This document shows, in pieces, positions 18,546-63,084 of a DNA stretch of 64,000 bases (position 1 is its first letter; every line of letters starts with the position of its first letter). The notes under the pieces were generated by a model. The model had not been told where the DNA came from. It was given only the letters and a program-made list of their open reading frames with translations, and did no database searches. Both the position numbers and the translations under genes were made by a program. The DNA is from Epiperipatus broadwayi (taxonomy: Eukaryota; Animalia; Onychophora), in the NCBI GenBank assembly GCA_028023455.1, contig JAQFVV010000003.1, positions 25,482,001 to 25,546,000 on the forward strand. Direction: 5' to 3'.

Positions 18546-19877
18546 TTTATATAAAATTACTCTTCAGAGTTAATCTTTGATTGAATATACTTCCAAATAA
18601 CAATAACTAAATATTAAAGATAATACGTCTTTTAATATATGCTAGAAAAATTATCTTCAAACTGATTCAAGCTTAATATAGCATTATTATTGATAAACTC
18701 AAATTAATTTGAAAAAAAAAAGCCACTTTCTGCATTAAAAATAGTATGAAAGACTCTTCAAGATCATGGCGAAGTGGAGCGATCACATAGATCATGAATT
18801 GACTATATCTTTTAAGTAGAATGAGGCTAGATTTTCTAATGGAAATCTGTAGATAGATAAAACTATAATTAAATATTCAATCACAAAAGAAGTTTTCAGC
18901 AATGTTCTTAAAAATGGGGGAAGTAAAAGACACCAGTTATTGAACTTTCCAATTAACCAGGTAATAAAGATTTAAGAAATTTACTATTCTTGTTACATCC
19001 TCTAACTAAAAATCCCTAAATACTCATTTGCTGACCAATATTGAATGATTAATTGTGATGGTTACAGGTCGGATACCTGAAATAAAGTCCTAATCCTGTG
19101 ATGTATATAAACACAGGAATCAAGAAGAGCAGGAACTTGGTCTACTTTGCTATAAAAGATATAGATTTTTCTAATGTAAAAAAAAAAAAAAAACTGCAAT
19201 AAAAATAACATGACCACTGCTTACATTTTCTGTTACAAATGATTCTCTTCCCTATAATGTAGAGCAAACCATTAAGTCCAAGATCCTCATTGGTGAAAAT
19301 TATAACCAGAAACAAATCTGGACATATAAATAGAATAGCAGTGATTGTGGATTCAATAACATAACTGTTCGGTTTCTATTGGTCTCTCTAGCTTCCAATA
19401 GCTGATTCTTAAATTAACTAAACAATTTTGATTCTTTACAATGATCTACTTCAGTATTTTATAAATATTAAAATAAATTTATTATATAAAAATACTTGGT
19501 TACTTTTAGTCTATTAATTTTATAATAATTTATCACTTAAAAAATGGATTAATCAAAAATAAAATTGATGTCATATGATTCAGAGTGGAAATGGAATTTA
19601 TGAATGCAAGATAGCAGTGTGGACAAGAATACTAAAATTTTTCTATTATATTCATTTTCTGAATCTCTTATAAGAGGTTTTAATAGCATAAAAAGACTAG
19701 AATTTTTAAAATTTATCATCAGTCTTGGCAGATTACTTAATGATGGAGTCACTTAATATATTTTAAGAATAACTTCATTCTATCATATTACAGTTCAGAG
19801 TAATATCAATATTAAACTTAAGATTATGTACAGTGTTGTCATATTGTTGGGATTTAATAACAAGAAAAAGTAAAGTA

Positions 19878-22666
19878 AATAGGTGGAGCTGCTTCTAGAA
19901 AGAAAATCACTTGCTTCACAGCTCTCTTGAAAAGACTTTAAAAAGTCAGTTTTCCTGCTATCAGAGGTATTGCCTATGTGTATTTGTCCCTTTAAAGAAC
20001 ATTATTTGCTGTTTGTGTGCCTTTTCATTCACAATTATCAGTTTTTAGTGTATTTCATCATTATTTCACTGCATCTACTATCTGATTATCTACAATAGAT
20101 TACCATATTCTTCCCCCTGTTTGATGGGTAGGTTCACTGTTCTATGTACCATAGAGGGTTTTATTTCCTCCTAGACCCTTGACTTCATTTCCTCTCCAGT
20201 TCTCTTATCACTCAAAACTTTTTTTACCAAATTTTTTTATGTATTGTTCCAATTATTTAGGTCATTAAAAACGATCTTCTTTTCTCACCCCCCCCCCTCT
20301 GGGGTAGCAAACTGCCTTAATTTCTAATCAATTTTTGTATTAACCAACTATAATTAACATTAGCAATCTCTCCAGTGTGAAATTACTTCATTTTTTTAAA
20401 ATCAAATTCTTTAGATTTCACTTCAATATTTTTTCTTTATATAATCTGTAACTCTTCCAAACAGTTTAAAGATGGCCACCGCCCCTAGCGGCAAAAATGT
20501 GCAAAAACATAATTCACAAAAACAAAAATCTTCAAAACTTCCAAAAATGTTAACTAAATTAAACTCCAAAGAAACTTTCAGCACAGAATCTATTTCAGGA
20601 TCTCCATCCCCAGACCCTCTGGATTTTCCTCCCCTACAGGGTGAGGCTTGCCCCATCAAAGGCAAGAAGCAATTCCAAAAAAGTAATCTCACCAATCAAA
20701 AGGTTGCTCCAAGCAAAACTGGGAACATTAAAAACTCCTCCACTATAAAGGGTAAAAAACAGCCTGCTACACCTAAGTTTAATACAGAAACCTCAGCCAA
20801 CTCTGATTTCTCTAAAAATTTAACACACAATAACTACTCCAAAGATGATGCTACTCATAATTCCCCATCTCAATCTACGAGCGCAACCAAGTCTGCCAAT
20901 ACTACTCCCACTATTATCAGTCACACTATAGAGCAATCCCTTATTAAAAATCCATCACCACAGCAAGTCTTTGCTAACTCCTATGCTCAGGCTGCATCCA
21001 GCATCTTACCAAAAAGTCCTAATAGAACCACAACACAAACACCCCAAGCGGAGCTCCTTCAAAATCTGTGGGGCCTTGATGAGGACAATCCGAACAATCA
21101 TGATTCAGCCACCTCTGAAACCTTCATTCCTACTAAACAACTCACACCAGAGAATCACACAGTGATCTCAGAACAATTTAACCAAACAGTTCCACCGCCC
21201 CTCCTCAAGTCACTTCGTTGCTACCAGAGTGACAGCTCTGTCATTCTGGCGGTTACAGATCTACAATGTGGACTCCATAAATTTCCAACACAGCAGCTCT
21301 ATGACCTTATCAAACTCCACAAGCTAACTGATTATATACATAAAATCCTCACCCTTCCTAATGACCGATACATGGCATTAGAGTTTCACAACACAATACA
21401 AAGACAAGCCTTCAAAAACAGATTCAAATTTTTAAACAATATGTTCATGGTTCCAATAGACACCAATAGACCATCCATACTTAAGGGGTTTATCAAAAAC
21501 TGCCACATAGGTATGCAGAGGCAGCACCTACAGAAATATCTCGAGGCATTCGGACAAGTTACCTCATTTGAGTACCTTAGGGATCCTCTCACCAATGGTC
21601 TCACCTTCACCAACACAGCCTTATTTCAATTCATCCTTAAAAAAGGTCTTTCTCCTGAAAGCATTCCCACAACAATAGCAGCTGAACTAGCACCTTTGGT
21701 CATTTCAATTAAGGGGATGAGGCCACAATGTTTCACCTGCAAAGACCGCAACCACCTTAATCGGGACTGCCCTCAAAAAAATAAATGCAACTCTTGCCAG
21801 AAAGAAAAGGGCCTAAACCACATCTGTGCTCCGCACAGCCCCAATAAATATGAACATCCTCCTTCAGCTAACCTCTCACCTCCACCTCACTTCAATTCAA
21901 TCTTTCAGCATTCGGCCACCCTCTCACCTTTCAGTAAGATTCCAGCTTCCCCTAGGCCACATAATTTTGGTCTCACTCACAGCCCACCACTCTCAGTTAC
22001 AGCTTGCTCACAGGACCCTCTTTCCTTAATGGACATGAACACTTATTCAAACTCAGAAATCATCCTGTCTGAGTCTACCAACTCTGGCCCTTCCGCCACT
22101 AACAAGAAACATCAGAAGCGTGCATGCCCTAACCCATCAGATAGTGACACCAACTCTGACAGGCAGATTTCCATCCTTGATCTTCCCGGTAAAATCATAA
22201 TGGATCCTTTTCCTGAACCAAGGGCAAGTCTCAGACATTCAGAACACACAAGGAAAAAAAGAATTCTTTCAGCAAAAAATTCTCTGGCTTCAACCCGGGC
22301 CTCGTCACCCTCCTCCCTTCGCACTCTCTCACCTTCCTCTGCTGAATTTTTCTCAGACAGTGGTTCATCAAGTAACATCAAGAATGAATCATTGTGCAAT
22401 TCTGGCAGGAGAAGCAAGAACTGTACTCCTCATATCTCTCCCAACCCAGCTCATCCTCGCTCACCATAAAATTTCCGTATTCCTACTTTTTTCTAAGATG
22501 TGCTTTTCTAACCAGCCTGAACTACACACCATTTCCCCTGTCCACTTCCCATTCCCTTTTTACATGTATCCTTCCCCTCTTACCATTTTGTTCCTGAAAT
22601 TTCATTTGTTTCATTGTATCTGTTTTTTTTTTTTTTTGATGAATAAATATCTCATCACTGAGAAAA
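19878..22666 (+). mobile_element. ORF1-only non-LTR retroelement (half-LINE-like), L1/Tx1-type ORF1
   Basis: 16-bp TSD aagaaaaagtaaagta at 19862-19877 and 22667-22682. About 594-nt 5' leader, one intact ORF, about 200-nt pyrimidine-rich 3' UTR, AATAAA at 22642-22647, then an A-run. No ORF2 sequence inside. Confidence 0.8.
20472..22469 (+). CDS. LINE ORF1/Gag-like nucleic-acid-binding protein (665 aa)
   Basis: Intact ORF with disordered K/S/P-rich termini, a SYAQAA motif, two predicted RRM-like segments (e.g. LQKYLEAFGQV...IPTTI...ISIKGMRPQ), a CCHC knuckle CFTCKDRNHLNRDC at 21729-21770, and a second Cys cluster CNSC...HIC. Confidence 0.85.
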   Translation: MATAPSGKNVQKHNSQKQKSSKLPKMLTKLNSKETFSTESISGSPSPDPLDFPPLQGEACPIKGKKQFQKSNLTNQKVAPSKTGNIKNSSTIKGKKQPATPKFNTETSANSDFSKNLTHNNYSKDDATHNSPSQSTSATKSANTTPTIISHTIEQSLIKNPSPQQVFANSYAQAASSILPKSPNRTTTQTPQAELLQNLWGLDEDNPNNHDSATSETFIPTKQLTPENHTVISEQFNQTVPPPLLKSLRCYQSDSSVILAVTDLQCGLHKFPTQQLYDLIKLHKLTDYIHKILTLPNDRYMALEFHNTIQRQAFKNRFKFLNNMFMVPIDTNRPSILKGFIKNCHIGMQRQHLQKYLEAFGQVTSFEYLRDPLTNGLTFTNTALFQFILKKGLSPESIPTTIAAELAPLVISIKGMRPQCFTCKDRNHLNRDCPQKNKCNSCQKEKGLNHICAPHSPNKYEHPPSANLSPPPHFNSIFQHSATLSPFSKIPASPRPHNFGLTHSPPLSVTACSQDPLSLMDMNTYSNSEIILSESTNSGPSATNKKHQKRACPNPSDSDTNSDRQISILDLPGKIIMDPFPEPRASLRHSEHTRKKRILSAKNSLASTRASSPSSLRTLSPSSAEFFSDSGSSSNIKNESLCNSGRRSKNCTPHISPNPAHPRSP

Positions 22667-22955
22667 AAGAAAAAGTAAAGTATGGGCTCAGTGTCCATAA
22701 GAGTTTATCACCTTGATGACCAATTGTGAAGGTTGCATTATATGTCTATGCAGTAGATTGAGAACCATTCAAATATATCTAATGATAATAATATCCTAAA
22801 TTAGAAATTATTAAATCTCAATTGTTTAAAGAATAAATTAAAATATAACTAATAAGATTTAGAAAGGTTGGGTTACCTTTAATTAATTTATAATGTAATT
22901 AAGAAAAAGACCACCAATGTGTGTTATTTTGTATATATATATAAATAAAGTATAT

Positions 22956-23053
22956 ATATACATTTCATATGTCAAAGCATTGACTGGGAAGCGAACCAGG
23001 GCCAGCTGCTTGGAAGGCAGCTATGCTAATCACTAGGCCATCAACACTTGACG
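22956..23053 (-). mobile_element. tRNA-Gly(TCC)-derived SINE, same family as 9373
   Basis: The minus strand reads gtcaa-gtgttgatggcctagtgattagcatagctgccttccaagcagctggccctggttcgcttcccagtcaatgc-tttgacatatg. TSD aataaagtatat at 22944-22955 and 23054-23065. Confidence 0.85.
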
Positions 23054-23341
23054 AATAAAGTATATTTGTCTATTTTTGGCAGTTTGTCATCATTATTTGC
23101 AATCAATAACTTAAGTAAAATAGTTAAGAGTTTTGTGTTTCTCCCTGACCTTAACAGGCTGTAAAAGAAAAAAATTATCAGTCTGTGATGTCAGAATATG
23201 GAATGCACATATGGATTGTCTTCGGATGATTTCATGTGGACTGCACAATTCTGTCAGTTACAGTATACAGTATATCACATTTGCATATGCAATGCATAAG
23301 TAGATACATATGCTTAAATAAGTACATTGTATACTATAATG

Positions 23342-60901: not shown

Positions 60902-62128
60902 TTATAAATTTGTAATTATAACTATTTGCCTATTTGCTATTAAAACACTATTAATATGATTTATTTCTTCTTTCAGATGTGTCTCATCTGAAAGGTTAAT
61001 TGCTCTATTTAAAAGAGTTTTGGCTACAGAAACTATCTGAGTTGGGTGATGATGAGAATGGAAATGCAAATATCTGTCTGTGTGTGTATCCTTTCTGTAA
61101 ATAGAAAAAGATAAACTATTTGGTGTTCTGGTGACTAGAACATCAAGAAAAGGGAGTTTTCCATCAGACTCTGTCTCCATTGTAAATTTAATATGAGGAT
61201 GCATATTATTTAAATGTAAGAAAAAATCATCTAATTTATTTTTTCCATGTTGCCATATGACAAAAGTGTCATCTATGTATCTGAGCCAAATGAGAGGTTT
61301 TAAAGATGATGATTCTAAAGCACGAGTTTCTATATATTCCATGAATAAATCAGCTATTACTCCTGAGATAGGTGAGCCCATAGGAGTACCAAAAACTTGT
61401 CTGTAATGCTGTCCATTGTATACAAAATATGTATTTAAGAGACAATGTTTAATTAAAGCAATAATATGGTCTGGTAAATTGCAACGTTGTGAGATTATAT
61501 TTAAAGCTTCATCAATTGGAATGTTTGTAAACAAAGACACGACATCAAAACTGACCAGAATGTCATTAGCATTAATTTTTAAACTTTTTAAAACAGAAAT
61601 AAAATGAAGAGAGTTTTTAATATATGATTTAATAGATGGGATTGTAGGTTTAATGAAATCCGATAAGTATCTGGCTAAAATATGAGTTGGAGAACCTATT
61701 GCACTTACTATTGGACGAAGGGGGGTATCTGGTTTGTGAATTTTTGGAAGTCCATAAAATTTTGGACAGACACAAGATTTTTCACGAGGGATTATTTTAT
61801 TTTTTATCTCTGTTTCAATAGGTGATTTATTAATAATAGCTTTTGTTGTTTTTTCCAAATACGTAGTATGATCTCTTTTTGATAGTTTATAAGTTTTATC
61901 ATTAAGCAGATCTAAAATTTTATTATGGTAAATGTCACGATCCATTACAACTGTGGCATTACCTTTATCAGCTGGAAGTACAACAATTGATTTGTCCGAT
62001 TTTATATTATTTAATGCTTGTCTTTCTTTCTTTGAAATATTATTTTTAGGAAGCTTAGCTTTTTTAAAAATATTACAAATCTCAGCTCTAGCCAAATCAG
62101 CCGATGTAGAATCAATTTTATCTAGAGC
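60902..62128 (-). pseudogene. Penelope-type reverse transcriptase, 5'-truncated
   Basis: 415-aa open stretch with YIDD at 61268-61279. The ORF-track start (62149) lies in the inverted copy and is not a real start codon. Confidence 0.9.
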
Positions 62129-63084
62129 TTTTCTTGATGTTCTAGTCACCAGAACACCAAATAGTTTATCTTTTTCTATTTACAGAAAGGATACACACAC
62201 AGACAGATATTTGCATTTCCATTCTCATCATCACCCAACTCAGATAGTTTCTGTAGCCAAAACTCTTTTAAATAGAGCAATTAACCTTTCAGATGAGACA
62301 CATCTGAAAGAAGAAATAAATCATATTAATAGTGTTTTATTAGCAAATAGTTATAATTACAAATTTATAAAAAAAAGCCTTATTTCAAGCCCAAAATAGA
62401 CAAAATAGGAAACAAAAAGATGATAAATCAGCTATTAGGATTTGTGTTCCATATGTAAAAGGAACTACAGACAGTATTGGACGTATATTAAAACGCTATA
62501 ATATAGATACAGCATTTTCTGCTCATCAAAAGATCAGCAATATAATAACCAAGCCTAAGGATTCAATCCCTCTTGAATCTCATGGTGTCTATCAAATCTC
62601 ATGTAAAAATTGTAAAGCTTCTTACATAGGTATGAGTAATCGTCGCATCAGTGTTAGGAGAGATGAGCATGCTAATGCAGTTAAACAACACTCATCATCA
62701 TCAGCACTCTCACTCCATACTATAGATTCAGGTCATAAAATTGATTTTTCTAGTACCAGGATCATATCCAGATGTGATAATCTCTACCAATGCAAAATTA
62801 GAGAAGCCATTGAGATACTTAAAAGGCCAGATTGTATCAATAAGCGAGATGATACATGCAAACTTCCTCCTATTTGGAAAGATTTTTTTAAAAAACATTC
62901 CTAAATTTAACATTTTTTGCTATTGGTGGAATTTTAACATTTTATTCAAATCAGTGATTGTAGCGCCTCTACAACCGTCTTTCTACCTTTTATAACTCTG
63001 TGGATGGCTTGTGTGACCAAGTCGAAATGTCAGTATATTAATATTAAAAGTTTTTAACACAGATGAACCCGCAAAATATGTATT
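62129..63084 (+). mobile_element. Second, shorter 5'-truncated copy of the same PLE, inverted (RT thumb, GIY-YIG, tail)
   Basis: Near-identical reverse complement of 60186-61151. GVY...YIG at about 62584-62631. A frameshift in the A8 run near 62370 separates the RT frame from the GIY-YIG frame. Confidence 0.95.
62991..63037 (+). ncRNA. Minimal type I hammerhead-like motif in the PLE tail (variant core)
   Basis: act-CTGTGGA-t-ggcttg-tgtgac-caagtc-GAAA-t-GTC-agt. Confidence 0.55.

Follow-up and report, generated by a model that had tools for sequence, protein, structure and literature searches.

A 64,000-nucleotide stretch of the onychophoran Epiperipatus broadwayi (contig JAQFVV010000003.1 of assembly GCA_028023455.1, positions 25,482,001 to 25,546,000; the whole stretch is called the window below) holds an insert with one long, intact open reading frame (ORF) and no sign of an endonuclease or a reverse transcriptase (RT), and the question it raises is what such an insert is, from what it descends and how it reached its site. 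A first-pass annotation, made from the letters alone, had taken it for a member of a non-autonomous, ORF1-only family derived from an L1/Tx1-like long interspersed nuclear element (LINE), and this view is borne out by copy number, by the shared ends of the copies and by a full-length parent with endonuclease and RT in the same genome. Very probably, the insert belongs to a non-autonomous family of ORF1-only retrotransposons, as a very young copy, and the family arose from a single deletion of ORF2 in an L1/Tx1-like LINE of ~6.07 kb.

The insert is delimited by the 16-mer AAGAAAAAGTAAAGTA, identical at positions 19862-19877 and 22667-22682 of the window, which forms a perfect 16-bp target-site duplication (TSD); given the composition of the window (73% A+T), the chance of a 16-bp match at a fixed position is ~4e-9. 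The 2789 bp between the two copies (19878-22666) agree with the first-pass annotation in having one uninterrupted ORF of 665 aa (20472-22469, plus strand), a pyrimidine-rich 3' untranslated region (UTR; 197 bp, 69.5% pyrimidine) and an AATAAA followed 15 nt later by the start of an A-run. The annotation had also seen no endonuclease or RT, and a Pfam scan of the 665-aa ORF found neither. The G+C content of ORF1 is 39-46%, with a strong skew of C over G, as against ~27% in the host DNA around the insert. The features are as follows:

19862..19877, plus strand: left copy of the TSD, 16 bp, the same as 22667-22682
19878..20471, plus strand: 5' UTR, 594 bp, beginning at the common 5' end of the family, (A)ATAGGTGGAGCTGC
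20472..22469, plus strand: ORF1, 665 aa and stop, intact, with an ATG start; a single uninterrupted ORF
21456..21719, plus strand: predicted RNA recognition motif (RRM)-like domain of the ORF1 protein (ORF1p), residues ~329-416, from an AlphaFold2 model and fold searches
21726..21776, plus strand: CCHC zinc knuckle of ORF1p, residues 419-435, CFTCKDRNHLNRDC; Pfam zf-CCHC E=0.02, under the curated cut-off
22470..22494, plus strand: what is left (25 nt) of the ORF1-ORF2 spacer, with the deletion junction falling between 22494 and 22495
22495..22666, plus strand: part of the 3' UTR, from the last ~170 bp of the parent LINE, 88-95% identical to the 3' ends of five longer relatives (L031-L035)
22642-22647, plus strand: AATAAA; the terminal A-run, 22663-22666, begins 15 nt later
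22667..22682, plus strand: right copy of the TSD, 16 bp, the same as 19862-19877

A search of the 5.6-Gb assembly from which the window comes yielded, with the element as query, 2466 first-look candidates; 40 of these were scored and 30 loci were fetched. Copy-level analyses were done on 27 short copies and on five longer relatives, referred to below as parents, all of them picked by their likeness to the window copy and thus biased to long and similar copies. Twenty-four of the 40 scored candidates span the element from position 10 or earlier to ~2789, at 92-98% identity. Junctions were counted genome-wide as 31-mers with at most three mismatches; reversed-pattern controls gave 0 in all cases, and every count is a lower bound. 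The deletion junction of the short element had 95 matches, the ORF1-to-ORF2 junction of the parents 38 and their ORF2-to-3' UTR junction 479. The insert is a member of a real family, with at least 95 copies carrying the same internal junction. By these lower bounds, the short type accounts for about one sixth of the insertions of the LINE lineage, and among insertions that reach the end of ORF1 it outnumbers the full-length type by about 2.5 to 1 (95 versus 38), an excess that would follow if reverse transcription reached the 5' end more often on a shorter template.

Orienting the 30 loci showed that the short copies have a common start, (A)ATAGGTGGAGCTGC, and a common end, ...CACTGAGAAAA, followed by a short A tail, within unrelated flanks; 17 of the 27 begin within 3 nt of the 5' end of the window copy. 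TSDs of 10-20 bp (median 16) were recovered in 15 of the 27 copies and all 15 are different. Copies sharing both ends and differing in their TSDs are what the first-pass annotation had proposed to look for, and at least 95 junction-bearing copies, the same ends and 15 out of 15 different TSDs answer to it. Positions 1-4 of the TSD are A in 11-14 of the 15 copies and are preceded by T or a pyrimidine; a target of the type TT|AAAA is that of L1-like apurinic/apyrimidinic endonucleases (APEs). The left TSD copy of the window element, which begins AAGAAAAAG behind ...AAC, fits this T/Y|AAAA preference of the short family. Several copies are truncated at the 5' end and have TSDs nonetheless (e.g. 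L020 and L028). Shared ends, different TSDs, 5' truncations and A tails together are the signature of target-primed reverse transcription (TPRT), and the proposal that an L1-type endonuclease had made the insertion is upheld by the TSDs, the target motif starting with AAAA and the truncations. We found no insertion into one specific repeat or target: the 15 recovered TSDs have only the AAAA start in common and the window copy lies in single-copy DNA. In this the short family differs from many Tx1 elements, which are target-specific. One copy, L014 (G000:C6307:580494-583221, minus strand), ends at element position 2736, ~50 bp early and before AATAAA is reached. Since an A tail follows there and a perfect 20-bp TSD flanks the copy, an alternative 3' end was used.

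The origin of the short element can be read from the five parents. These match it only to position 2617, 25 nt past the ORF1 stop, and then enter a sequence common to them. Their ORF1 is 93-95% identical to that of the window element at the DNA level, and the sequence 3' of it matches APE (PF03372, PF14529), RVT_1 (PF00078, E=1.6e-26) and zf-RVT (L031-L034), the order in L031 and L032 being PF03372, PF14529, PF00078, PF13966 with ORF1 upstream. The parent LINE is thus ~6.07 kb long and consists of a 5' UTR, an ORF1 of 665 aa, an ORF2 of 1083 codons and a 3' UTR, with a spacer of ~60 nt between the ORF1 stop and the ORF2 start, MLISVVSLNIRGL... At its 3' end, the short element (element positions 2618-2789, 172 bp) matches the last ~170 bp of these parents with 88-95% identity. 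The short element thus reads as the full-length LINE less a segment of ~3.3 kb that begins 32 nt before the ATG of ORF2 and ends ~12 nt after its stop, so that ORF2 was removed almost exactly. The boundaries of the deletion, ...TTTTCT|(C/G)CATTCC and ...CAATCA(G/C)A|AAGA, show no GT..AG, no GC..AG and no microhomology; given that neither splice-site pair is present, the deletion was not made by canonical splicing, and it may have come about by a template jump of the RT or by a deletion at the DNA level in a master copy. It had been foreseen that related copies might continue into an ORF2 with APE and RT and that the insert would then be a prematurely polyadenylated copy of an ordinary LINE. 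The relatives do continue in this way, but premature polyadenylation is excluded because the element carries the true 3' end of the parent, joined at a fixed junction.

Among solved structures, the parent RT is closest to human L1 ORF2p (3e-25, as against 2.5e-14 for R2), in a set (the PDB) that is without CR1, RTE, I or jockey references, and the parent APE is closest to the L1 endonuclease (L1-EN; 1e-6), and neither a TRAS1 nor an R1 endonuclease came up below E=1. Both domains are consistent with the L1/Tx1 superfamily, by nearest-structure match and not by phylogeny. A word search for named relatives of the parent RT gave no match at a cut-off of 1e-20, which was too strict to be informative.

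The short family has a history of its own. Compared with the consensus of four parents, its own differs by 5.2% over the 5' UTR, 3.5% over ORF1 and 6% over the 3' segment, and among the 40 scored candidates the copies that continue into ORF2 are at most 94.7% identical to the element while short copies reach 98%. Three subfamilies, with 10, 12 and 5 members, can be told apart among the 27 short copies by 34 informative non-CpG sites; their consensuses are 0.36-0.9% apart and each have an open 665-codon ORF. The three subfamilies indicate that the element evolved and was amplified after the deletion, and they speak against an origin of each copy de novo from full-length RNA.

The window copy is by far the youngest copy seen. 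It lies 0.29% from the family consensus, with at most three private substitutions, the remainder being mostly subfamily-B states in its 3' part; other short copies are 0.8-6.3% from their subfamily consensus, typically 2-2.5%. Among the 27 short copies, only the window copy and L005 (664 aa) keep the ORF, and in the other 25 it is broken; a protein-level search of the genome likewise found it open end to end in these two copies only. The ORF of the window copy is therefore intact because the copy is young, i.e. near-identical to the family consensus. The first-pass annotation had left the choice between a very young element and one under selection: with so few private substitutions and 25 of 27 copies broken, its first option is favoured, and for its second no constraint was found at the amino-acid level (see below). 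The window copy is also a mosaic. At element positions 212, 694 and 764 (window 20089-20641) it carries the parent-like states of subfamily A, and at 2074, 2102, 2128, 2248 and 2311 (window 21951-22188) those of subfamily B. Similar mixing was seen in L013, L003 and L011. It could result from recombination or template switching between co-expressed subfamilies, or from an intermediate master copy that persists.

We then considered the protein that the element retains. ORF1p has a core between long low-complexity N- and C-terminal parts. Searching it against Pfam at E<=10 gave only zf-CCHC (E=0.02, residues 419-435, 15.4 bits versus a cut-off of 20.8) and DUF7610, and in Pfam and NCBIfam there was nothing besides the weak zf-CCHC match. 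Word searches with ORF1p gave no matches, and nothing significant was found among PDB sequences. An exhaustive HMMER search of 1.84 billion proteins returned five matches (E 1e-4 to 1e-3) over residues ~300-457, all of them CCHC-knuckle proteins, and by these searches ORF1p appears to evolve very fast. The zinc knuckle has the canonical spacing C-x2-C-x4-H-x4-C at residues 420-433, and none of its C, C, H and C residues varies when it is aligned to the five distant matches; the knuckle reported in the first-pass annotation is thus a canonical motif, CFTCKDRNHLNRDC, with a weak Pfam match (E=0.02). AlphaFold2, run on a shallow alignment of six sequences (ORF1p and the five HMMER matches), modelled residues ~334-444 with a predicted local distance difference test score (pLDDT) of 75-89 and the order beta-alpha-beta-beta-(alpha)-beta followed by the knuckle, and residues 225-333 at low confidence. 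In a VIA-align search with this model the RRM of Seb1 was matched with Z 8.4 and a root-mean-square deviation of 2.3 A over 69 residues, and RRMs made up almost all of the best 50 matches (model residues 105-192); Foldseek gave a probability of 1.00 to single RRMs, with E ~1e-2. Residues ~329-416 are therefore assigned, with moderate confidence, to an RRM-like domain, the Z score lying in the middling range of the tool. The first-pass annotation had spoken of RRM-like segments: one such domain is supported by the fold searches, and residues 225-333, which might hold a second, are modelled at low confidence. As a lead only, a protein atlas places ORF1p near zf-CCHC, RRM and ZCCHC3-like clusters, with a score of 0.90-0.91.

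An RRM followed by a CCHC knuckle defines the Type I ORF1p in the classes of Khazina and Weichenrieder, a type known from the L1s of plants and from Tx1-like elements of animals other than mammals (PMC5203782). We assign the ORF1p of the short element to this type with moderate confidence, on the predicted RRM-like domain and the knuckle behind it. No Transposase_22 match was found in Pfam at E<=10, and the protein is not of the Transposase_22/coiled-coil type.

Taken together, these data suggest the following course of events. A ~6.07-kb L1/Tx1-like LINE would have lost a 3.3-kb internal segment once and so founded the short family, which kept a promoter-bearing 5' UTR, ORF1, a 25-nt piece of the spacer and the terminal 172 bp, including the poly(A) signal. 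Transcription of the short element would be driven by its own 5' UTR, with AATAAA as the polyadenylation signal, and ORF2p acting in trans would nick T/Y|AAAA sites and reverse-transcribe the short RNA. The absence of an RT, the 3' end shared with the parent and the L1-type target motif lead us to infer such mobilisation in trans by the ORF2p of an autonomous LINE, presumably of the parental lineage or of a close relative with the same 3' end. The short RNA is probably coated in cis by the ORF1p that it encodes, a protein with an RRM-like domain and a CCHC knuckle, as has been proposed for HAL1.

Several results weigh against this reading, and we give them here together with the alternatives to which they lead. 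The role of ORF1p was examined through substitutions in ORF1. Raw shared variants, used as a stand-in for substitutions of the master lineage, were dropped since many are recurrent CpG transitions, and the analysis was repeated without CpG changes. Private substitutions in the 27 copies provided the neutral baseline, with a ratio of nonsynonymous to synonymous changes (N:S) of 471:180; 2.8% of these substitutions introduce a stop codon. Indels occur about once for every 8-9 substitutions and are frameshifting in 83% of cases. The fixed differences between the short and parent lineages have an N:S of 23:8, the same as the neutral baseline (Fisher p=1), and this ratio rejects an omega of 0.3 or lower (p=0.0006), so that a function of ORF1p in the short lineage is without support from sequence constraint. 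The comparison (23:8 versus 471:180) showed no sign of constraint on the protein, and this apparent lack of amino-acid-level constraint on ORF1 fits the near-absence of detectable homologues. No fixed indel or stop separates the ORF1 of the two lineages, for which the probability under neutral decay is ~0.03 with 31 substitutions; this divergence pools the parent branch, in which ORF1 was presumably required, with the short branch, without an outgroup. Between subfamily consensuses there are 10-25 substitutions, giving a probability of ~0.1-0.3 for an intact frame, too few to decide. Selection for the ORF1 protein in the short lineage is, on these sequence comparisons, undemonstrated. We regard it as unlikely that the open frame is kept in master copies while the amino acids drift neutrally, selection acting on the RNA being translated and not on the function of ORF1p. 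Examples would be the association of the RNA with ribosomes near nascent ORF2p, or escape from RNA surveillance. In a weaker version, the short family may be active now and out-competing a dying parent. If true, selection for translated RNA would give a reason for the success of a half-LINE other than the usual one, that ORF1p binds its own RNA in cis. CpG sites within ORF1 carry C>T or G>A changes in 40-50% of the short copies (L001-L028), at a mean divergence of only ~2.3%, and private variants are mostly non-CpG singletons. Such high CpG mutation at low divergence indicates that the element is probably heavily CpG-methylated in the germ line.

The donor of ORF2p is the other point at which the evidence falls short of the scheme. 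None of the five parents examined is fully intact, each having ORF1 and/or ORF2 broken, out of at least 38 full-length copies in the genome, and the 790-aa RT part is open genome-wide only in L032, whose APE part is broken, and in C6584, whose ORF1 is broken. Parent copies moreover look older on average than the short copies, from which it follows that the donor could be another LINE family. A search of the assembly for the empty site gave 0 matches, with no empty allele or haplotig that would show the insertion to be polymorphic, and we consider this search uninformative. With a copy as young as that in the window, a working ORF2p must have been available until very recently. The ORF2 of L032 has no frameshift and is interrupted by two in-frame TGA stops, both CGA>TGA changes at CpGs, and C6584 has the same 794-aa open frame as L032. 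One of these two TGAs, between APE and RT (offset 896 from the deletion start in L032), is present in four of the five parents. A defect inherited from the master copy was considered for this TGA and set aside, as the change is a CGA>TGA at a CpG and L035 keeps CGA, and recurrent decay is at least as likely; we read it as a hotspot of CpG decay, with inheritance as the alternative. If the TGA was inherited, the parents themselves were copied in trans. The possibility that element and mechanism are as described while ORF2p comes from a different active LINE family, one that accepts any polyadenylated RNA, is in our judgement unlikely, though the strongest of the alternatives. It would account for parents older than the youngest short copies and for the lack of an intact one among the 5 of at least 38 inspected, and RT-bearing LINE sequences are very many in this genome. 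The short family, however, keeps the terminal 172 bp of its parent (88-95% identity) and the same pattern of TSDs and targets, and with 5 of at least 38 full-length parents inspected an intact one may well exist. The 168,716 first-look candidates for the parent RT segment in the 5.6-Gb assembly point to a very large LINE load.

The remaining alternatives concern the nature of the insert itself, and of these the production of the short form anew each time from full-length RNA, by non-canonical splicing or a reproducible template jump of the RT as in spliced integrated retrotransposed elements (SpIREs), deserves most attention, improbable as we take it to be. It would explain why the junction is exactly the same in all copies and why the deleted segment is almost exactly ORF2, and spliced L1 insertions are known in human (PMC5860796). 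The boundaries, CC/GC...GA/CA, are however neither GT..AG nor GC..AG, and short copies share fixed differences from all five parents in the 5' UTR, ORF1 and 3' end (3.5-6%) and form subfamilies of their own, while ORF2-containing copies are no more than 94.7% identical to the short element as against up to 98% for short copies. The view that an ordinary full-length LINE left here one copy cut short, by premature polyadenylation or otherwise, has next to nothing left in its favour: relatives 93-95% identical through ORF1 do run into an ORF2 with APE and RT, but the last 172 bp are the genuine 3' end of the parent joined at a fixed point, at least 95 copies have this junction in common and the TSDs recovered are all different. 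We give as little credit to an ORF held intact by selection at the level of the host, as in a domesticated ORF1-derived gene like L1TD1 or ZCCHC3, or to a retrogene of a host gene. Its intact state and the position of the protein in the atlas, near ZCCHC3-like RRM/CCHC clusters (0.90-0.91), would suit such an origin; against it, the locus is one of at least 95 dispersed copies, nearly all of them broken, it has the 5' and 3' UTRs of a LINE, a fresh TSD and no amino-acid constraint, and its near-identity to the family consensus accounts for the intact ORF. The single-copy retrogene of a spliced host gene, which the first-pass annotation had kept as a possibility, is contradicted by the same copy number and by both UTRs being shared with the LINE. 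We thus retain a single deletion, followed by propagation of an ORF1-only family, as the best explanation of the insert.

The surroundings of the insertion were also examined. The left flank of the window copy is single-copy, and the right flank is unique for 55 bp and then enters an unrelated abundant repeat. This repeat (window 22738-23250, starting 55 bp 3' of the insertion) has more than 3000 first-look matches in the genome at 70-91% identity and apparently consists of two sub-units of ~200 bp. The only other long domain-bearing ORF of the window is one of 415 aa at 60902-62149 (minus strand) with RVT_1 (E=2e-13), a fragment of another retroelement. An Rfam scan of the window gave no matches, and there was no hint of human or viral DNA in it.

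To our knowledge, ORF1-only half-LINEs are well described only in mammals, as HAL1. HAL1s are derivatives of L1 that lack ORF2 and encode ORF1p only; they have arisen several times independently and are still propagating in rat (PMC5753468; PMC2241872). The short family resembles HAL1 and RNHAL1 in being non-autonomous and multi-copy, in the deletion of ORF2, in encoding ORF1p only and in keeping the 5' region of its parent. It differs in that HAL1 comes from mammalian L1, with a Type II ORF1p (coiled coil and Transposase_22), while the ORF1p here is of Type I, and in that its copies (at least 95) are far fewer than the ~7500 of rat. The family works like HAL1 but is an independent analogue and not HAL1 by descent, given that its ORF1p is of Type I and not Transposase_22. 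Internal deletions that join the 5' and 3' ends of an autonomous element, as here, are also known in the short internally deleted elements (SIDEs) of R2 and R1, in TbRIME and in Ag-Sponge, non-LTR elements that spread by the TPRT machinery of their parents (PMC3414825); SIDEs, however, have no ORF and are site-specific in ribosomal DNA, whereas the present element keeps the whole of ORF1 and lies at dispersed sites. Internally deleted derivatives of the L1 type are reported to be rare, with no L1 SIDE observed at the time, which was ascribed to the cis preference of ORF2p (PMC3414825). HeT-A of Drosophila (with TART/TAHRE) is likewise a non-LTR element with gag/ORF1 only that depends on an RT in trans. 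This jockey-clade element is specific to telomeres, where it lies in head-to-tail arrays that have no TSDs, and it has a host function; the family described here is, in contrast, dispersed and flanked by TSDs, with no sign of a host role. SpIREs are human L1 copies from which an internal segment was removed at the RNA level before integration (PMC5860796); they use canonical splice sites and are dead ends, unlike the present deletion, whose boundaries are not GT..AG and whose product founded a propagating lineage.

The family is thus a new example of a HAL1-like strategy and changes no principle. A recent half-LINE of Type I, with RRM and CCHC knuckle, in a large, AT-rich non-mammalian genome means that this strategy is not tied to the ORF1p of mammalian L1. 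For annotation, it means that a gag-like ORF found intact in this assembly is not necessarily a host gene and can instead belong to a young half-LINE. The parent, its deletion derivative and the three subfamilies form a natural system for asking whether ORF1p in cis improves an RNA as a template for ORF2p acting in trans.

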